Sequence record: NC_071007.1
Length of the DNA stretch: 64,000 bases
Strand: one strand, 5' to 3'
Both the position numbers and the translations under genes were made by a program. This document shows, piece after piece, positions 3,267 through 64,000 of the stretch (positions are counted from its first letter, which is position 1; every line of letters begins with the position of its first letter). The notes under the pieces are model-generated. The model made no database searches, was not told the DNA's origin, and saw only the letters and a program-made list of their open reading frames with translations.

Positions 3267-6200
3267 TTAAGCCGGAGGGAGAGGAATAGGTGTATCTGTT
3301 TCACCATCCAGACGAGGCCAAGTATTATTCATCGTGATATCAAGGATTGTCCTATCACGAGTCGGAATATCCCCACCGTAAAGTTCTGATTGTTTAATAA
3401 AACGATATGTCCCATCTTCATTAAGTTTACCAGAAGATACGGGGATACCTGCATCGCGAACTCTTGTTAAAGGGTAACCCGAAATAGCAAATGGTTGGTA
3501 TAGATCAATTGTCACAATACCGTTTTCACCGGTTGTTATTTTTGCAACCAGTAAAGTATGACCATCAGCGTGTTTTAAGGTTTTGGTGAGTTCATAAATA
3601 CCTCTCGAACCAACAGCTGTGCAATATAGATAGAAAACTGTGTTTTTGTATAAATCAGAATACGTTCTTAAATCAAACGTTTTCTTTGTAGCTTTCATGG
3701 TGTAACCGTTAAATGTAACAGTTACGTCACTATTAACAAAAACAGTCCAGTTATCTTGAACAAATATTGCACCTAAGAACGCCAGGTCATTTATAGTAAA
3801 CCCATCTGACCCAACCATCCAATTCGCTAGTGTTGGTTGAACGATATTGGCCGCCGACCCGGTGGCAACAACAGGATAACCGTTTAAAACACCAAGACCA
3901 TCCACTGCTTGAACAGTTGAGTTATACCCAACATAAACATGGTTAGCTGTAAAAAACAACTCCGGTCTTCCATCAGCTCGACGTTTATCATAACGGACAT
4001 TAGGACAATCAACATATCCTGCCGTTATAAAGAAACAACTTGGATATGAATGAATGACAAACTCGTTATTAGTCGTTCCTACATTATAAACTTCAGTTCG
4101 AGGTTTTAATAATGTATTTCCGATATTAGATATACTTGAACTCCAATAACCATTAGTTAAAACGAATGTGTTATCAGTATTACAAACATCAATCCCCGGC
4201 GTGGTATCAACAACTGGGGAATTACCATACCGATCAACACTGGGATAGTACGTTCTTGTTCCTGTAACATTAATAGTTATCTTTTTAAAACCAGTTACGG
4301 GATCAATGCCATTACTTGTCCAGGTAAATGTAATTATAAACCCACGTGTAACGTGTGGATCCTGGGAATAATGATACATGACCAGCATTGTAGAACTATA
4401 AACAGCTGCGCTCTCTGCACCCGCGATTGGACACAAATCAATGGAAACAAATAAATCTGTTATGTCACTGAATCGAGCACCAATATATTGCTTAGGTATA
4501 TCAAGATACTGTTCTTTTGTTAATACAACAATTTCTTCTGGCTTATGTTCAGCAACTAAAACCTTTGTATTTTCGTCATAATTCCATTTCATTGTTATCG
4601 GAAAATACATACGGCCCAAGTCAGGATCAACACTTTTTTGGTCAACGCTTGGTTTAGCAATACTGGGAATGGGATTTGAGTTCCAGTCATTTAATTTAGG
4701 ACGATGTATGTATAAACCTAAGGAATGGGTTGTTGAATACTTATCTCTTTTTTGTGGCCAGTTCCTAATCGGATGAGGTTGCCTTAAGTTTTTAACCACC
4801 CCATATTTGGAATTAGGTTGTCTCCCAAATATTTTCTTACTAATAAATGGTGATTGAAGTTCTGGTCTAAACATGTATTTATTACCATCACCTCCCTCAG
4901 TCATCCTATTGAATCCAATAGTTGTACCTGTTTCTGCGGCAGCCATGAATTGTTCAATTGGTTTTGTCTTAACGCCACCATTATATTCATAAATGTCGCT
5001 GAATACCCTAGGGAACCCTGCGATTCCAAATGGAGTCGGAGGATCATGTCTTACTGACCATGTTGTTAAATCACCTCTATCAGTATATTGAGCTGTAGGG
5101 TTAAAAATGCTTGTGTAATCTTTATCAATATCCCCACTAGTATTTAAATGAAGATTGACATTAAGATAAGGAGGTCCGCCTTCAACAGCAGTAACAGTCC
5201 CGACAGGACCAAACCCAGGTATCCAACTCCAACATGCTCTACTGAATGAGTTATTAAATAATAGAACAATTCCATCATTGTCATTATCGGTTATATAACA
5301 TTTTTCATCAGCTGATAGATTAGTTGTTTTACCAGTTAAAACGTCAAACGTAGGTTTTTTCCATTTTGGATCTATTGTCATAGTTAATGCATTAAAATCC
5401 AAATCGTAATTAATGCAAACAGTAGCCCATGTACTTCCCGTGTTTCCATTGACGTTATAAACCCAATAAAGAGTAGCAACTATTTTTAATTTCGCTATAC
5501 CTTTAACATCTGGATTTTGTAAAATGAAAAAGTTTCTACGACGGTGGGATTGAACAAGTGTACAGGGTTGAGTAAAATTAGATAAATAGCTATTTACAAG
5601 TCCGTTTGATAAGACATACTCACCAACACGTATATTTGGTGAAGATGCTTTTCTTACTCTATCGACTGTGTCATAAGCTAATGAAACCTGCACCGGTGTG
5701 ATTTTTGCTTTATCCGTTGAAGTTAAAGCTGAGACAGGGAATCTAAATATTTTTAAGGTATAGTTAAGGGGACTCCCTACCGGTGGAACAGCTACACCTG
5801 TGGTATCTTGAGATACCCCAAAGAAATAAACCCAATCACCCACTTTTGCGATTGTTAATGCAGCGTAAAAACCAGAATCGGAATCGATTCCAGCTGTCTT
5901 CATTGGAGTGACATCAACTTCAACAAATGAATGCGCGGCAGGGTTTAATGTCCCGTTTGACAAACTAACCATAATGTTCGAGGCGGGAGAGAGCGAGGCA
6001 ATTGCTAGTACATCTCGGCCTGATCCAGAAATAACGTATTCTGGGTTGATTGATTTAGCTGTAAAGTCAGGGTGGGCATAAGGAACATATGTCATTACTA
6101 CATTACTGGAATTGTAACGGTCAAGCATCAACTCCTGATAAATATAATAAAGACCTTTGACCTTTCCATCAAACTGTCTAATTAAACCAACTAACCAACC

Positions 6201-7139
6201 ATTACCTTCCCTAACAAAAACTGAATTCTCATAGTCGCCGCCCAAACCTTGGAATGACCCACTAATCGACGGAGGGAGATATATCCCAGAACCATAATAA
6301 CTAAAAGGGAGTTCATTCTGAAAAAGGTATTCTTCAGAATCTGGTTCTGATTCTGAAATTAATTTAGCTAACCCGGCAGGAGTTGAATAAAGATCTTGCC
6401 TTAACCCTTCACTATCTTGTTGAGGTGAGGCTGTCTGATAGTTTTGGATTTTTTCAATATTAACATCAACCGGTTTAATGCCGTGAGGGTTAACGGTTTT
6501 ACGAGCATGATTCTTTAAAGCATTCCAGCGAAGATTATAGATATAATCTAATTTATCCCAGGAGTCTTTTTCCATTTGGTTTAATAAACCAGATATTTTT
6601 TCGCTTTGTGCTAAAACCCTACTTTTCATTAAAGTAAATAGCTGGAGCATGTTTCCAAAACCAACTATTTCTTCTTTATTACGAACGTCCATTTGATGAC
6701 TGGATGGGTAAAATGTTTTTGGTATCCCTTCTATCTGGGTTTCGTAATCAATTTTACCACCTGTAATTAACGCATTTTCTAAAAGATCAAGTAACTTATT
6801 TCTTGAAATAACTCCAGAACCGACTTTCTGATAAATGACATCAAGTTCTACAGCCGTATTAAGAATATGGTCTTTTAATTCAATATGGAGATAAACTGCT
6901 TTCCCCAGCATTGTTGTTAATTTTGGAACTTGGGTTTCAAAGATATAATCTTGACCTTTATTTAACCTTGTTCCGCCATTATAGATAACTACCCCTTCTT
7001 CATAAAAAGGGCCTTCCGATGGAACGATCCAAGGAATAGGAATATCTGCAACTTTATGTTTTTCCTCAATTTTATAAAGAGGGTTAGTTGCAGTATAATC
7101 TATGTCGATAATTTCAATATCTTTCATAGCAAACCTCAA
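3267..7139 (-). CDS. Tail fibre-like virion protein (1290 aa), paralog of 7192..10830
   Basis: N-terminal ~330 aa align by eye with 7192..10830 (IDYxT-NP, GGKIDYETQIEGIPKTF vs KVHWDNIDNKPLWF, NPHG/NEHG motif, SGSFQGLGG vs DGSFEGLGG, NGTLNPAAH vs NGTLDPSRH). C-termini end with similar IDLYQPFAISG / IVPYNRFSMDG segments. Position resembles the phiKZ gp131-135 fibre cluster. Confidence 0.75.
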   Translation of the reverse strand: MRFAMKDIEIIDIDYTATNPLYKIEEKHKVADIPIPWIVPSEGPFYEEGVVIYNGGTRLNKGQDYIFETQVPKLTTMLGKAVYLHIELKDHILNTAVELDVIYQKVGSGVISRNKLLDLLENALITGGKIDYETQIEGIPKTFYPSSHQMDVRNKEEIVGFGNMLQLFTLMKSRVLAQSEKISGLLNQMEKDSWDKLDYIYNLRWNALKNHARKTVNPHGIKPVDVNIEKIQNYQTASPQQDSEGLRQDLYSTPAGLAKLISESEPDSEEYLFQNELPFSYYGSGIYLPPSISGSFQGLGGDYENSVFVREGNGWLVGLIRQFDGKVKGLYYIYQELMLDRYNSSNVVMTYVPYAHPDFTAKSINPEYVISGSGRDVLAIASLSPASNIMVSLSNGTLNPAAHSFVEVDVTPMKTAGIDSDSGFYAALTIAKVGDWVYFFGVSQDTTGVAVPPVGSPLNYTLKIFRFPVSALTSTDKAKITPVQVSLAYDTVDRVRKASSPNIRVGEYVLSNGLVNSYLSNFTQPCTLVQSHRRRNFFILQNPDVKGIAKLKIVATLYWVYNVNGNTGSTWATVCINYDLDFNALTMTIDPKWKKPTFDVLTGKTTNLSADEKCYITDNDNDGIVLLFNNSFSRACWSWIPGFGPVGTVTAVEGGPPYLNVNLHLNTSGDIDKDYTSIFNPTAQYTDRGDLTTWSVRHDPPTPFGIAGFPRVFSDIYEYNGGVKTKPIEQFMAAAETGTTIGFNRMTEGGDGNKYMFRPELQSPFISKKIFGRQPNSKYGVVKNLRQPHPIRNWPQKRDKYSTTHSLGLYIHRPKLNDWNSNPIPSIAKPSVDQKSVDPDLGRMYFPITMKWNYDENTKVLVAEHKPEEIVVLTKEQYLDIPKQYIGARFSDITDLFVSIDLCPIAGAESAAVYSSTMLVMYHYSQDPHVTRGFIITFTWTSNGIDPVTGFKKITINVTGTRTYYPSVDRYGNSPVVDTTPGIDVCNTDNTFVLTNGYWSSSISNIGNTLLKPRTEVYNVGTTNNEFVIHSYPSCFFITAGYVDCPNVRYDKRRADGRPELFFTANHVYVGYNSTVQAVDGLGVLNGYPVVATGSAANIVQPTLANWMVGSDGFTINDLAFLGAIFVQDNWTVFVNSDVTVTFNGYTMKATKKTFDLRTYSDLYKNTVFYLYCTAVGSRGIYELTKTLKHADGHTLLVAKITTGENGIVTIDLYQPFAISGYPLTRVRDAGIPVSSGKLNEDGTYRFIKQSELYGGDIPTRDRTILDITMNNTWPRLDGETDTPIPLPPA

Positions 7140-57852: not shown

Positions 57853-59571
57853 ATGCAAAAGAAATTAGTAGCTCGTGTTTGTAAACACGCTTATCTATCG
57901 TTTTATAAATACAATAAAGAAAAAGATCTTCTTACAGCAAAGATTACAAATATCTTTGATGATGGTTCAAGAGAAAGTCAATTAGTTCATATTGAAGATT
58001 ATAAGCGTGACTTCTATATTGTCAAAAAGAAATACAGAACATTTAAAGATTCACGCGACTATATTGAATTGAACAAATGCGATAAATTCCAATCTAACGA
58101 GGGGCGTTTAGCGACTAATATTTCTAAAGTTCTTTTTGGTAGACCTGATCGTCAATCTGATTTAAATGAACTTAAGAATAATCCTTTTATTTTTGGTTGT
58201 CAGGAAACCGTCCCTGTTGTTTTTAAACAACGGTTCTATGACAAATACCCTGACCATCAACCACAAGAAGCCTATAGTGTTGCAGCGTATGACGTTGAAA
58301 CATTTATTTTGCCAGATGGTTCCGTTGGACCTGTGTGTATGGCTTCCACCACATCCGAGAATCGCGTATATTGGTCTGGGTTACGCTCTATCTTTAAAGG
58401 CGAATCTGATCACGTTATCATTAAGAAATTAAATGAGTACGCTGATAAGTACCTTAAAGAGTACATGGAAAAACACAATGTTGTTATTCATTTCCAATTA
58501 GAAGATACTCCCGGAAAGGTTGTCTATAACAATATTCAGTTCTGGCATGAATTAGGTCCTGACTACGTTGTTTCTTGGAACGCTAACTTTGATATGGAAG
58601 CAAACCAAAGAGAACTGAAAAATGAAGGGTTTGATTTAGCAAGAACGTATTCCGATCCTAATACACCAAATGGTTATCAGGATTATTTTTATTATCCAGG
58701 TCGTGAATTTAAAACTAAAGTTGATGGGACTAAAACACCCCTTGATAACCATGAACGGTTTCCTGTTGTTAAAGCACCTGCTAAATGGCAGTGGTTTGAT
58801 GGCATGTCATTTTACGCTATTAAACGTGCACCGCAAGGAAAGAAAGAGTCGTATTCACTTCAAGCTACTGCTCAGCATGAGAAAGTGCTCTCAAAGCTTT
58901 ATACAGACGTTGGGAACCATTTACAAGAAGGTTCTGCTGAATGGCATAAATGGATGTTGGAAAACGAACCTTATTTGTATTCCATGTACAACATTCAAGA
59001 TAACTGGGTTATTGAAGATATTAATCGGGCAACTAATGATTATTCAATGTCACTTCCGTCATTGTTGACTTCTTCTGAACTAAACTCGTACCAATCTCAA
59101 CCAAGCATGATTTCGGATATGCTTTCTTTTATTGCATTGAAGAATGGTTATGTTTGGGGGACAGTAGGTCGTCGTAAAGAAGATCCTTTTAAAGAAATGA
59201 AACCAGACCTTCGTGATTGGATCGCCCTGCTTCATGCAGAGATGAATGAAGAGAATGGTAAGAAACTTTATGAAGGATTAAATAACTGGGGTTCTAAAGC
59301 CCATGGTTACACTGATGACATTGACGTTAGTTCAGCGTATCCTTCTGTAACTGTTAGTTTGAACGTTAGTAACAAAACAACCAAGCTAGAGGTATGTAAG
59401 ATAGAAGGGATTGATCGCATTGAATATAGACGACTTGGGGTAAACTACGCAAGTAGTCCATTAGCTAATGCAGTTACCTTGGCGTCTACTATTTATGGGA
59501 TGCCTTCATTGATTGAAATTAATAACTTCTATACGACTAAAGTTAAAGCCTTTATTGAAGAACAAAATTAA
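57853..59571 (+). CDS. Split family B DNA polymerase, exonuclease plus motif A part (phiKZ gp82-like), 572 aa
   Basis: ExoI AYDVETF, ExoII SWNANFD, ExoIII YNIQD, motif A DIDVSSAYPS; ends ~75 aa later without motifs B and C. Confidence 0.85.
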   Translation: MQKKLVARVCKHAYLSFYKYNKEKDLLTAKITNIFDDGSRESQLVHIEDYKRDFYIVKKKYRTFKDSRDYIELNKCDKFQSNEGRLATNISKVLFGRPDRQSDLNELKNNPFIFGCQETVPVVFKQRFYDKYPDHQPQEAYSVAAYDVETFILPDGSVGPVCMASTTSENRVYWSGLRSIFKGESDHVIIKKLNEYADKYLKEYMEKHNVVIHFQLEDTPGKVVYNNIQFWHELGPDYVVSWNANFDMEANQRELKNEGFDLARTYSDPNTPNGYQDYFYYPGREFKTKVDGTKTPLDNHERFPVVKAPAKWQWFDGMSFYAIKRAPQGKKESYSLQATAQHEKVLSKLYTDVGNHLQEGSAEWHKWMLENEPYLYSMYNIQDNWVIEDINRATNDYSMSLPSLLTSSELNSYQSQPSMISDMLSFIALKNGYVWGTVGRRKEDPFKEMKPDLRDWIALLHAEMNEENGKKLYEGLNNWGSKAHGYTDDIDVSSAYPSVTVSLNVSNKTTKLEVCKIEGIDRIEYRRLGVNYASSPLANAVTLASTIYGMPSLIEINNFYTTKVKAFIEEQN

Positions 59572-59684: not shown

Positions 59685-60692
59685 TTATTTAAAACTAGCG
59701 ACATTGTCATCTAACATAAGCTTATCAAATTCAGCAAGTATTTGTTTACTATTATTATCATTACCAGAAATATTTGCCTCCATTTTGACACAAACATCAG
59801 CAATGTTAAAAATATATTTCTCGCAATCTTTACTGAGTTTTACCAACTTGGCAATAGATTTCCCAAGTTGGATAGTGTAAGTTTCAAGACGTTCGTGTTG
59901 CTTAGTAAGGTTTTCATCTTTCCCAACAAACTGTTTATTCCTGTTCAAAGCTTGGGTTGCAATTTCAAGATCAGCAGTCATAGTCGCAATTAGCTTCTTT
60001 GCTTCTGTACGAACAGAAGCAATAATATTGGCCATTGATTGTCCGTCTTCGACTGCCTTAAAAAGAGCAAGTATTGAACCGTCCTGAGTTCTACCATTTT
60101 CATGGTCTTTGATCATTTTAGTCAGTTTTTCAAGTTCTGCACGAAGCTTGGTCCCGTTATAACCTTCAGCATTACCAAGTGTAGTAATAGAAAGACCTGT
60201 TAGGTCAAGTTTTCTATAGGACGCCGACATAGTCTCTGTCATTACATCCCAGAATTCATTGTAACTTGCAAAACGCACGCTTCCATATTTCCCAGAAAGA
60301 ATACTTTCCAGTTTTGCTTTGGATGCGGTCGCTTCTTCCAATAACTTTTCTAGTTTATGATTTGGAGCGGCCTTGATTACAAATGTCGATTTGGGAATTT
60401 GTTCAATCACTTTTGAAAGACTTGTGTCACTTTTACCAGAACGACTGCCAAAAAAGAATTCCTTAATCGCCCGTAAGAAATTCATGATCATTTCGAGTAT
60501 TTTCTTACCTCCAGCTTTAATAGCGGTACCAAACCCTTCTTGACCAGAGATCGCTCCCATATCTACGCCATTGAGCTTCAGTACAGTTTGAGCGTAGATA
60601 CCATCAGGGGTTTTAAAATCTTTATTAGCAATAGATTCAAATCCAGAAAGTACACTAAAGACATGATCCATTTGTTCAATATTAACGTTCAT
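59685..60692 (-). CDS. Internal head protein paralog (335 aa)
   Basis: MNVNIEQMDHVF...GFES...GQEG...AIKEFFFG leader; similarity to 42526..43533 continues patchily through the body (VRFASY/VRFAPY, AVEDGQ/SVENGN, YTIQLGK/YTQALGK). Confidence 0.75.
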   Translation of the reverse strand: MNVNIEQMDHVFSVLSGFESIANKDFKTPDGIYAQTVLKLNGVDMGAISGQEGFGTAIKAGGKKILEMIMNFLRAIKEFFFGSRSGKSDTSLSKVIEQIPKSTFVIKAAPNHKLEKLLEEATASKAKLESILSGKYGSVRFASYNEFWDVMTETMSASYRKLDLTGLSITTLGNAEGYNGTKLRAELEKLTKMIKDHENGRTQDGSILALFKAVEDGQSMANIIASVRTEAKKLIATMTADLEIATQALNRNKQFVGKDENLTKQHERLETYTIQLGKSIAKLVKLSKDCEKYIFNIADVCVKMEANISGNDNNSKQILAEFDKLMLDDNVASFK

Positions 60693-61829: not shown

Positions 61830-61864
61830 TTAACTCTTACCTCCAAATTGGAGGTAAGAGTTAA
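61830..61864. terminator. Intergenic hairpin (15-bp stem)
   Basis: TTAACTCTTACCTCC-AAATT-GGAGGTAAGAGTTAA. Confidence 0.75.
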
Positions 61865-61875
61865 ATAAAGTATTA

Positions 61876-62421
61876 TTAACGATATGCGTAGTTGTTCAAA
61901 GTCTGAGCTGCGTTTGCCGGGAACATATGAACAAGTTTTGCGACATCAAAACCATTAATGAATTGGTCGCGCACTTTGATGTTAGCGGAAAGCATTACCA
62001 TGAACAACATGAATTTCTTGTAACGATCGATATCCATGGCAGGAGCAAGTTTTTGCTTTTCAATTTCATAAAGAGGGGCGTACAAACTGTTTTGACCAAA
62101 TACAGGTTTGTTTTCTGCGATTTTAACTACCCAGTGGTCAAGTACTTCATGTGCTTGATTTCCATCAATTTGAAGAAGATTAACAATGTCCTTCATAAAG
62201 GCAATTTGGAAATCAGTTCGTTCTTCTGGAGAACTGTTTTTATATTCTCCTTTAAGGAACAGAATAAACTTATCAAAACCATTCTTATAAATGGTTGCCG
62301 GAGTTGTAGGAATGACTTCAGTAGGAACACCCAGAGCGGTATCCATCCCCTTTACTTTATCAGTTTGTTCTTCAACAACGTTACTGCGGGTTTCAACAAC
62401 AGGCGGTTTTAACGTTTTCAT
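61876..62421 (-). CDS. Conserved hypothetical protein (181 aa)
   Basis: AAGGA SD; start abuts the upstream stop (TAAATG). Confidence 0.6.
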   Translation of the reverse strand: MKTLKPPVVETRSNVVEEQTDKVKGMDTALGVPTEVIPTTPATIYKNGFDKFILFLKGEYKNSSPEERTDFQIAFMKDIVNLLQIDGNQAHEVLDHWVVKIAENKPVFGQNSLYAPLYEIEKQKLAPAMDIDRYKKFMLFMVMLSANIKVRDQFINGFDVAKLVHMFPANAAQTLNNYAYR

Positions 62422-62808
62422 TTACATGTTATCCTTAATGTGTTTTTCCAACATTTTTGTTGGATCTAAATTACCCATTTTGTTTTTAGCGGCACGCTGC
62501 GCTTGTTCTTTGGCTTTACGTTTACCTACCGCTACACCTTCCAAAAGATCATCAATCAAATTGACAGGAGAATCCATGTAATCTTTCAAAGGTATTAATG
62601 TGTCGTATTCACGAAGCCCAAATGTTTCACCGATACTTTTAATTGAAAATATATGGAAAAAATCTCTACGTTGATGATTATACACTAACGTATTCGCCAT
62701 TGTTTCTTTTTCATTAACCCATCCGTATGACATGCAATATGCACGATGTTCGGAAAACAACGTCTCCAAGCTAGAGACGTTGTCTTTTCTATAGGTATTG
62801 TAAAGCAA
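62422..62808 (-). CDS. Reading frame lacking a credible start; probable -1 frameshift extension (T-like segment) of the upstream gene
   Basis: Frame is open from 62949 to the stop at 62422; the track's TTG start has no SD; C-terminal IPLKDYMDSPVNLIDDLLE resembles GT-extension motifs of tail assembly chaperones. Confidence 0.55.
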   Translation of the reverse strand: MLYNTYRKDNVSSLETLFSEHRAYCMSYGWVNEKETMANTLVYNHQRRDFFHIFSIKSIGETFGLREYDTLIPLKDYMDSPVNLIDDLLEGVAVGKRKAKEQAQRAAKNKMGNLDPTKMLEKHIKDNM

Positions 62809-62861
62809 CTTATTGGCTGATTCTAACCATCGTTTTCCACTACCGGTGTGGTCGGGATAAC

Positions 62862-64000
62862 TTAAGAAAGAATTTCCTCTTGTAAAGCTCCGATCTCCCG
62901 ACGAAGTGCTATCAACATCCGGGCCTGGTCGAAAAAATTCAATATTGGATCAATTGGTGTAAATCCAGCACGAATTTCTTTTTGAGGATGATGTTGTTTG
63001 CATTTTGGACATTGATCGTCGGCAATACCAACAAAGGTATAAGAGAAACGAGGAATAACTTTTAGCACTTTAGTAAGTGCCTCGGTGTAGAACTCTTCAT
63101 CCTCATTGAACATATCAATGAGACCTTGGTTAAACTCACCAGGGTCTTCTGACCGAAGAATTACTTCATCTTTCTCATCGGGGTTAAGAGGATCTGCTTT
63201 ATTTGTCATTGATTTAAAATATTGCAGATAATCGATCATTCGCAAAGAACTAATGAGTTCTTTTCTCTTTTCGCTAAATTCGTTGGCATTTGGGAATTGA
63301 GATGCTAGTTCTCGAATTTCTTTATTAACCAGATTAGCTGCGTGATCGAAACAAGTGAAATATTCAGACAAATAAGGACTGTCAATATCAAGTACAATAT
63401 CGCCAGTTGGGCTGACCACTTTGGAATCAATATCTGTCATATCGACATCACGATAAGGAACTGTACTTTTCCACAACTCTTCACGGGTATATTTTTTACC
63501 AGTGTTAATTGTTTCAAGCATTTGATTCCAATATGCTTCAGGATACCGGATATCATCAAAAACAACCAGCTCAGCGGGGTCAACCAAAATGTTCCGAGAG
63601 TCTTGGCAACTTTCCGCAAGACAGGTAAGACGATAAGAAACGCCCTTAGGTGCTGCAATAGCCAAAATAGCAGTGGCAATAATATCAGCATCTTCACGCT
63701 TAATAACGGTCAGCAGTTCTTCTGATTCGACAATATCACTAACTGACCAATAAGTGCAACGGCTCAGTACCCAATTCATGATGGTTCTGATAATCAATGC
63801 GCGTTCCAAATGTAAACTTGAAATACGAATTCGACCACCAAACTGAGTACGTTGTAGCGATACAGAAATATTATTAATTAGACTAGCCAATTCCCATGGA
63901 GTAGGAACTTTAACCCGAAGTAAAATTCGAGAGTTCATCAGAGTGATAATAAATTCATCTGCCGATGACGATGCTTTCAAAAGACTACGCCGCATTCGAT
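62862..64000 (-). CDS. Tail/baseplate assembly chaperone-like protein, probably 5'-truncated at the window edge
   Basis: Frame is open to the window end; CLAESC and CPKC Cys pairs with a D-x2-I-L-x-x-I segment, as in T4 gp26-like/G-type chaperones (inference). Confidence 0.55.
   Translation of the reverse strand, partial: RMRRSLLKASSSADEFIITLMNSRILLRVKVPTPWELASLINNISVSLQRTQFGGRIRISSLHLERALIIRTIMNWVLSRCTYWSVSDIVESEELLTVIKREDADIIATAILAIAAPKGVSYRLTCLAESCQDSRNILVDPAELVVFDDIRYPEAYWNQMLETINTGKKYTREELWKSTVPYRDVDMTDIDSKVVSPTGDIVLDIDSPYLSEYFTCFDHAANLVNKEIRELASQFPNANEFSEKRKELISSLRMIDYLQYFKSMTNKADPLNPDEKDEVILRSEDPGEFNQGLIDMFNEDEEFYTEALTKVLKVIPRFSYTFVGIADDQCPKCKQHHPQKEIRAGFTPIDPILNFFDQARMLIALRREIGALQEEILS
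62931..62937 (-). promoter_or_regulatory. Candidate -1 ribosomal slippery site U UUU UUC
   Basis: In the 0 frame AAU UUU UUC, heptamer in X XXY YYZ phase; -1 frame opens four codons earlier; possible hairpin at 62897-62923, 7 nt downstream. Confidence 0.55.

Follow-up and report, generated by a model that had tools for sequence, protein, structure and literature searches.

A putative programmed −1 frameshift, conserved across phiKZ-like jumbo phages, joins two genes annotated as separate

We analysed a 64,000-nucleotide stretch of sequence record NC_071007.1 (hereafter the window), which matches Aeromonas phage ZPAH34 with 100% identity (OM810292; 234.5 kb; genus Chaoshanvirus). The minus strand carries two adjacent genes of interest: an upstream gene for a 536-amino-acid protein of the phiKZ gp077 family and a downstream open reading frame (ORF) annotated as a separate small gene. 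Our analysis indicates that the two are probably connected by an ancient programmed −1 ribosomal frameshift, which is conserved across the chimallin-encoding (phiKZ-like) jumbo phages and their relatives. Since a −1 shift joins both frames, the “second gene” would be the C-terminal extension of a transframe product. A frameshift at this site of a phiKZ-like jumbo phage had been proposed from the letters of the sequence (the original prediction), and the orthologous loci strongly favour it; the accompanying proposal that the pair are tail assembly chaperones of the G/GT type failed, as discussed below. Coordinates are those of the window and refer to the minus strand unless stated otherwise; adding 124000 gives the coordinate in OM810292.

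The slip site and its reading frames in ZPAH34

The window end cuts the upstream gene, whose start lies outside, leaving its 3′ part with residues ~158–536 and the stop codon TAA (62862..64000). The full gene has 1611 nucleotides and encodes 536 amino acids (UOX39622.1; positions 5529–7139 of the fetched ZPAH34 locus, L001), and is thus not the small gene it had been taken for. Its codons 513–514 (Phe-Phe) contain the proposed shift site, a slippery T TTT TTC heptamer in X XXY YYZ phase (62931..62937), which can be read directly from the sequence; the 0-frame codons at 62939–62931 are AAT TTT TTC. After the heptamer, the 0 frame runs through 22 sense codons to a TAA stop (62864–62862). The −1 frame is closed by a TGA four codons before the heptamer (62950..62952), is open from 62949 and continues for 169 codons past the T run to the TAA at 62424–62422, exactly as first described. 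Between 62865 and 62930, the 22-codon tail of the 0 frame overlaps the opening −1-frame codons that follow the shift, which makes this segment dual-coding.

This geometry is an extreme outlier within the window, beyond what chance would give. Among the 102 in-phase XXXYYYZ heptamers found in long ORFs of the window, which served as the comparison set, the one at 62937–62931 has 171 open codons in the −1 frame when the count begins with its first base, while the next best site has 33 and the median is 6. The earliest ATG, GTG or TTG codon in the −1 frame is the TTG at 62808, which is not preceded by a Shine–Dalgarno-like sequence, and GenBank places the start of the downstream ORF at the ATG at 62733. 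A separate observation concerns the last codons of the 0-frame tail (62870–62885), which include a Shine–Dalgarno-like AAGAGGA; there is no suitably spaced in-frame start behind it, and it is kept in Chaoshanvirus-, Ferozepurvirus- and Petsuvirus-like loci.

Conservation of the arrangement in related loci

To compare related loci, we used 35 GenBank phages and eight metagenomic or IMG/VR contigs, which reduce to 37 distinct loci: three of the eight contigs duplicate other loci, and ZPAH34, OBP and pEt-SU are each counted once. Only six loci were added by the IMG/VR scan. The set covers the genera Chaoshanvirus, Ferozepurvirus, Petsuvirus (OBP), Elvirus, Risingsunvirus, Tidunavirus, Ludhianavirus, Phikzvirus (PA7), Miltoncavirus (PhiPA3), Seoulvirus (SPN3US), Agricanvirus, Chiangmaivirus, Noxifervirus and Goslarvirus, as well as Halocynthia phage JM-2012, Bacillus phage AgentSmith and metagenomic contigs. 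Across these loci, the identity of the upstream protein to that of ZPAH34 drops to ~20%.

The arrangement is present throughout. Every one of the 37 loci has a run of five to nine T (T5–T9) located 11–37 codons ahead of the stop of the upstream gene, the next ORF always lies in the −1 frame, and this frame is always open back past the T run. A canonical in-phase T TTT TTN is found in 34 loci. The codon ahead of Phe-Phe likewise ends in T in 34 of the 37, whichever amino acid it specifies, and in Kosakonia phage Kc263, where Phe-Leu replaces Phe-Phe, the heptamer pattern is retained as T TTT TTA. Past the run, the −1 frame extends for 151–182 codons (median 171) in the 33 loci tabulated; of four further metagenomic loci, two fall in the same range, one continues for ~100 codons and one runs off the contig end. 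No independent start of the second ORF is conserved, so the comparison of orthologues that had been suggested as a check came out on the side of recoding.

All 35 GenBank records fetched annotate two separate coding sequences (CDSs), with no joined CDS or frameshift, which agrees with the earlier remark that the second frame is usually called as a hypothetical gene of its own. Three loci depart from the others in the extent of the overlap: in Ea35-70 (L022), RSL2 (L023) and Noxifer (L024), the −1 frame is open for 44–62 codons upstream of the T run, the 0/−1 overlap is far longer than in ZPAH34, and some annotators or phrog_13274 profiles begin the small ORF before the run.

Synonymous constraint at the heptamer and in the overlap

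Column-by-column comparison of 19 loci with the same geometry revealed a sharp change in codon use at the site. In the G-F-T-P-I-D-P stretch just upstream, the first and second codon positions are nearly invariant (share of the commonest base 0.84–1.00) and the third positions are free (0.37–0.63). Around the heptamer, from codon −1 to codon +3, the third positions are frozen as well (0.95–1.00). Synonymous divergence is low in the overlap, with a proportion of synonymous differences (pS) of 0.05–0.18 compared with 0.35–0.93 farther downstream. Both readings of the overlap are maintained: the 0-frame tail past the run is conserved and ends at a conserved stop, and among the first six residues of the −1 frame, positions 1, 2, 4 and 6 are invariant in all 13 sequences of one large group. 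Judged by these alignments, the frozen third positions and the conservation of both readings have the look of a functional slip site with dual coding.

The downstream reading frame as a C-terminal extension

The −1-frame extension of ZPAH34 comprises 169 codons and the stop TAA (62422..62930; phrog_19747), of which GenBank annotates the final part as a CDS of 103 amino acids (UOX39621.1; 62422..62733). The stretch between the 0-frame stop and this annotated start (62734..62861) is treated as intergenic in the record, and yet it evolves like −1-frame coding sequence. Comparison of ZPAH34, AerS_266 and CF8 gives a ratio of nonsynonymous to synonymous differences (pN/pS) of 0.37–0.41, with 11, 12 and 22 substitutions at codon positions 1, 2 and 3, respectively, and serine and arginine codons switch codon family while the residue stays the same. 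In PA7, which is phiKZ-like, the corresponding 87 start-less codons encode a sequence with 40% identity to the PhiPA3 frame (E 8e-14).

Candidate starts show no such consistency. The annotated starts of the small ORF in the relatives lie 8–236 nucleotides past the upstream stop and do not align with one another. The first ATG, GTG or TTG of the −1 frame follows 20–89 codons after the run (median 43; 33 loci), mostly without a Shine–Dalgarno sequence; PA7 has none for 87 codons and the Bacillus phage none for 89, and CF8 lacks any in-frame start upstream of the position matching the ZPAH34 TTG. The initial description of the downstream ORF as devoid of a Shine–Dalgarno sequence or credible start was therefore borne out, both by the TTG at 62808 and by the lack of a conserved start in the relatives. 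A scan for sigma-70 promoters ahead of the downstream ORF found nothing, a result of little weight for these phages. Taken together, these comparisons make it likely that the UOX39621.1 ORF is the C-terminal part of the extension and no independent gene.

The PHROG database splits the small ORFs into five families (phrog_19747, 24181, 12109, 7580 and 13274). Profile–profile comparison joins the two large extension groups as homologous (hhalign probability 95.7%, E 1e-8, 99 columns), which indicates that the arrangement is ancient and not convergent. A similar alignment of the Bacillus phage piece was set aside as circular, since the profile it was compared with already contains that sequence. 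The extension begins with ~30 residues that are predicted to be disordered and is predicted to be helical thereafter; its AlphaFold2 (AF2) model is poor, with a predicted local distance difference test score (pLDDT) of 42. A flexible linker followed by a helical domain is the probable organisation according to these predictions. A profile search of the upstream family yielded 617 members, and the best 150 of these matches included no simple in-frame fusion of the two parts; none of the 15 close relatives is fused in frame either, and a few longer proteins of the family carry their extra sequence at the N-terminus, not the C-terminus. The lack of in-frame fusions is consistent with a need for both a short and a long product.

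RNA structure around the site

In ZPAH34, the 70 nucleotides after the run fold with −14.0 kcal/mol, no better than shuffled sequences (z +0.48). The stem that had been put forward as part of the signal (62897..62923) is present, with ~5 pairs, but is unsupported as a stimulator, given this score and the fact that nothing comparable is conserved in 27 loci. Searches of Rfam returned chance-level matches only.

Stronger structures are found farther downstream. Near-perfect hairpins lie within the extension, 20–110 nucleotides past the 0-frame stop, and folding of this region beats shuffled sequences in 11 of 15 loci (z −2 to −5.7). The ZPAH34 example is a near-perfect 15-pair hairpin with a candidate TTG in its loop (62754..62786; z of the region −2.6), and such hairpins recur at the equivalent place in most of the loci L002–L014, L019 and L020. 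Between ZPAH34 and CF8, the stem sequences have changed in a compensatory manner that leaves the frame open, candidate in-frame starts often lie inside the hairpins, and most of the hairpins lack a T tract. They are too far from the run and are therefore not classical stimulators. They might instead mask internal starts, protect or end some transcripts, or attenuate expression.

The upstream protein

By its full-length profile matches and conserved gene order, the upstream protein is a member of the phiKZ gp077 / PhiPA3 gp074 / EL gp47 family (phrog_4585; E 2.6e-69 for ZPAH34 and 2.6e-69 to 1.6e-76 for the family). A note in the PhiPA3 record names phiKZ gp077, 201phi2-1 gp136 and EL gp47 as homologues, and tblastn finds the family in 69–253 phage records. 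Four cysteines stand out in its sequence. Cys284 and Cys289 (C-x4-C; 63606..63623) and Cys488 and Cys491 (C-P-K-C; 63000..63011) would form the two halves of a four-cysteine site; all four are invariant in 15 of 15 homologues, the second pair as C-P-x-C, and distant relatives too have a C-x-x-C ~25–35 residues ahead of the shift site. This conservation suggests that the four cysteines probably constitute a metal site.

The AF2 model of the upstream protein is confident (pLDDT 80.7, predicted template modelling score 0.81); in it, the last helix begins at the shift site. A fold search of the PDB with this model gave no match at E < 1, and Pfam and PDB sequence searches with both pieces gave nothing meaningful. 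In BFVD, after the homologues from jumbo phages come eight T4-like hub proteins, not all of which are named (E 1.5e-3 to 9e-3, probability 0.92–1.0, TM-score 0.34–0.55 on the target); the names include “baseplate hub assembly protein, T4-like”, “hub assembly chaperone”, “baseplate hub subunit” and “T4 gp51-like”. One family member, P0132, has sub-threshold matches to PF12322 (T4_baseplate; E 0.0076, 16.4 bits, cut-off 24.5) and to phrog_150, “baseplate hub” (E 0.009). Some depositors label homologues as baseplate or hub-assembly proteins. In T4, gp26 and gp51 are given as hub-assembly chaperones, and gp51 is not in the particle (PMC3004832, Table 2). Against an assignment of function stand the weak, sub-threshold nature of these similarities and the lack of any Pfam match for the ZPAH34 protein and 14 homologues. 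On the strength of the BFVD folds, the P0132 profile matches, the depositors’ labels and the role of T4 gp26 and gp51, we tentatively regard a part in hub or tail assembly as plausible.

Two other designations were considered and set aside. The label “putative ZipA-like cell division protein”, which is used in GenBank and also for RisingSun, Joad and LAh10, is unsupported by Pfam, PDB and fold searches. The “gp77” of the Goslar virion paper is a different protein, and its numbering cannot be mapped to the Goslar homologue, Goslar_00081.

A model of frameshifting and its alternatives

According to the model that we favour, ribosomes translating the 536-amino-acid gp77-family gene arrive at U UUU UUC, codons 513–514. 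The majority would continue for 22 codons and stop, giving the 536-amino-acid protein. Some would slip back by one base, with both Phe-tRNAs re-pairing on UUU UUU; now in the −1 frame, these ribosomes would run past the stop of the 0 frame and add 169 residues, so that the long product would have ~683 amino acids (514 shared residues plus 169). The two isoforms may act together in tail or baseplate-hub assembly: the part common to both would be a relative of the T4 hub-assembly chaperones gp51/gp26, and the extension would bring in a further partner.

Several observations weigh against this model. Sites of this kind often, though not necessarily, have a stimulator, either a structure 5–9 nucleotides downstream or a Shine–Dalgarno-like sequence upstream. 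Downstream of the heptamer, none of 27 loci has a structure that is stable or conserved, and no Shine–Dalgarno-like sequence is visible before it in ZPAH34. PhiPA3, Noxifer and the metagenomic locus L040 have G TTT TTY, an imperfect site for tandem slippage. The loci are related, and thus 37 of 37 does not amount to 37 independent events. The hairpins past the 0-frame stop have the appearance of signals that close a gene; they may point to an ordinary intergenic region and are the strongest argument for a conventional end of the gene. Finally, the case for a transframe product is one of sequence and its conservation.

If the locus consisted of two ordinary genes, the second would be translated from a start of its own, at the TTG at 62808, the ATG at 62733 or a non-canonical codon, and the overlap at the T run would be a by-product of Phe-Phe. 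This would fit the two CDSs of all 35 GenBank records, the conservation of Phe-Phe in the upstream protein, the strong hairpins past the 0-frame stop and the presence of an ATG near the stop in some loci, such as OBP, pTD1 and Ea35-70. It would leave unexplained that the starts do not align and are missing for 87–89 codons in PA7 and the Bacillus phage, that protein conservation reaches upstream of every candidate start, that the −1 relation holds in 37 of 37 loci with the −1 frame always opening before the run, and that T precedes Phe-Phe in 34 loci irrespective of the amino acid encoded; we consider two ordinary genes unlikely. The main mechanistic rival is transcriptional slippage, in which the polymerase of the phage or the host would slip within the T run, so that part of the mRNAs gain a base and their normal translation yields the same long protein; that the slip occurs on the ribosome is presumed. 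The conserved element is indeed a T5–T9 homopolymer that reaches T8 or T9 in some loci, these phages have unusual multisubunit RNA polymerases, and no ribosomal stimulator was found. However, runs of T5–T6 are short for polymerase slippage, and those observed are mostly T6 and once T5. The X XXY YYZ phase, which is irrelevant to a polymerase, is kept in 34 of 37 loci, and the frozen positions include the codon ahead of the run and the base behind it. The short runs and the conserved codon phase make slippage of the polymerase very unlikely.

The identity of the products was also reconsidered. The logic of a slippery site near the 3′ end followed by a long −1 extension is that of the lambda G/GT-type tail-assembly-chaperone pair, which is encoded between the tail tube and tape-measure genes, binds the tape measure and the tail tube and is not part of the virion, and very weak fold matches to “tape measure chaperone” proteins (E 0.94 and 1.5) point in the same direction. 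Nevertheless, the upstream protein has 536 amino acids, as opposed to ~100–150, and the four-cysteine site; within 6 kb there is no gene for a tape measure, tube or sheath, neither a Pfam nor a PHROG tail-chaperone family is matched, and the best annotated fold matches are hub-assembly proteins and not G-like chaperones. The G/GT identity put forward in the original prediction is accordingly highly improbable. An error of sequencing or assembly in the homopolymer, or a decaying gene, would turn the locus into one gene or a pseudogene, and homopolymers are error-prone in some sequencing chemistries. That the same frame relation recurs in 37 independently sequenced loci with runs from T5 to T9, that the 0-frame tail is conserved together with its stop, and that in-frame fusions are absent from the best 150 of the 617 family members leaves this explanation with next to no probability.

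Gene neighbourhood

ZPAH34 is a chimallin-encoding phiKZ-like jumbo phage, and the label in the original prediction was correct, because the genome of AerS_266, its closest relative, has genes for chimallin, PhuZ and two multisubunit RNA polymerases (PMC10673249). The gene pair is surrounded by genes for the virion RNA polymerase beta′ subunit, a gp79-like virion protein, hypothetical proteins and DNA polymerase, and the same neighbourhood is found in the relatives. Next in line is a conserved 181-amino-acid gene (phrog_14374; 61876..62421), which is defined by its ORF, PHROG match and GenBank annotation and has a homologue of ~180 amino acids at this position in most loci. The TAA of the extension and the ATG of this gene directly adjoin (62419–62424), with an AGGA ~11 nucleotides upstream. 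Since the extension stop abuts this ATG, translation of the 181-amino-acid gene could be coupled to that of the extension. After the gene, a terminator-like site with a 16-pair stem and a T tract (61830..61864) probably ends the conserved cluster of the gp78-like gene, the gp77-like gene, the extension and the 181-amino-acid gene, which is its final member.

Further features lie around the cluster. An ORF of 335 amino acids (59685–60692) has a sub-threshold match to PF12699, the phiKZ internal head protein (E 6e-5, 22.8 bits, cut-off 27). The naming of a conserved plus-strand gene at 57853–59571 (also L002:7479-9206 and L017:5051-6446) is inconsistent among records: it is called “DNA polymerase” in ZPAH34, OBP, EL and others and “ribonuclease” in AerS_266 and KPN8. 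Around the cluster, AerS_266 (L002:6248-6823), ZPAH34 (L001:25-1071) and PhiPA3 (L019:379-1572) have HNH or homing endonuclease genes inserted at differing sites.

Relation to known recoding systems

The direct homologues of the ZPAH34 pair are phiKZ gp077, 201phi2-1 gp136, PhiPA3 gp074 and EL gp47, each with the following small ORF (PhiPA3 gp073, 201phi2-1 gp135). Gene order, T run and frame relation are as in ZPAH34, and there is no difference in kind; records label the proteins hypothetical, “ZipA-like” or “baseplate protein”. Lambda gpG/gpGT, together with P2 E/E+E′ and the Mu equivalents, shares with them a −1 slip on a heptamer near the 3′ end, two proteins with a common N-terminal part, conservation across distant phages, a morphogenesis context and frequent mis-annotation of the second frame as a separate gene. 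In contrast, no sequence or fold relationship connects the two systems, the ZPAH34 upstream protein is ~4 times larger and has a probable four-cysteine metal site, and its locus lies between the genes for virion RNA polymerase and DNA polymerase, not beside the tape measure. The ZPAH34 pair is thus a functional parallel to G/GT and not a member, since the logic is alike and size, neighbourhood, family and fold are not.

Among annotated fold matches of the upstream protein, the T4 proteins gp51 and gp26 (PF12322; phrog_150) rank best. They have ~210–250 amino acids, whereas the jumbo-phage protein is twice as long, and its membership in their family is not established, because the ZPAH34 protein is below every Pfam threshold. 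We know of no frameshift in gp51 or gp26. Recoding by −1 shifts is familiar from the T7 capsid proteins 10A/10B and from tau/gamma of Escherichia coli dnaX, where it yields isoforms that differ at the C-terminus in a ratio set by the frequency of slipping. These systems share the tandem-slip logic and the two isoforms per gene with ZPAH34 and differ in the genes and functions involved. Moreover, dnaX uses an upstream Shine–Dalgarno-like element and a downstream hairpin, whereas no stimulator was found in ZPAH34, and the shift shortens the dnaX protein but lengthens that of ZPAH34 by ~170 residues.

The mechanism itself is already known; what would be new is the gene family that hosts it, its conservation throughout that family and the lack of a stimulator. 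In line with the original prediction, our searches of the full-text literature, a body that leaves most subscription journals outside, turned up no description of a frameshift in nucleus-forming or phiKZ-like phages, and the papers on ZPAH34 and AerS_266 (PMC10673249) do not mention a frameshift.

Implications for jumbo phages

The broadest reading of these results, on which we are evenly divided, is that the phiKZ gp77/gp76 pair undergoes universal, unannotated recoding in Chimalliviridae and their relatives, including the Bacillus phage. The short and long products would be isoforms in hub or tail assembly that are unrelated to G/GT and represent a second, independently evolved two-isoform solution, with the extension hairpins providing added control.

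If the frameshift is real, the annotation of two conserved “hypothetical” genes would be corrected in the genomes of several hundred jumbo phages; the upstream-protein family is present in ~250 GenBank phage records. Proteomic and ribosome-profiling data from phiKZ-like phages would contain a ~78 kDa species and peptides that ordinary databases do not match. A deeply conserved site without an evident stimulator would join the few −1 sites known from bacteria and phages, and the principle of chaperone isoforms in a fixed ratio, as in G/GT, would extend to a different protein family. For the nucleus-forming phages, the two isoforms, the probable metal site and the possible hub role would offer a functional handle on one of their conserved proteins.

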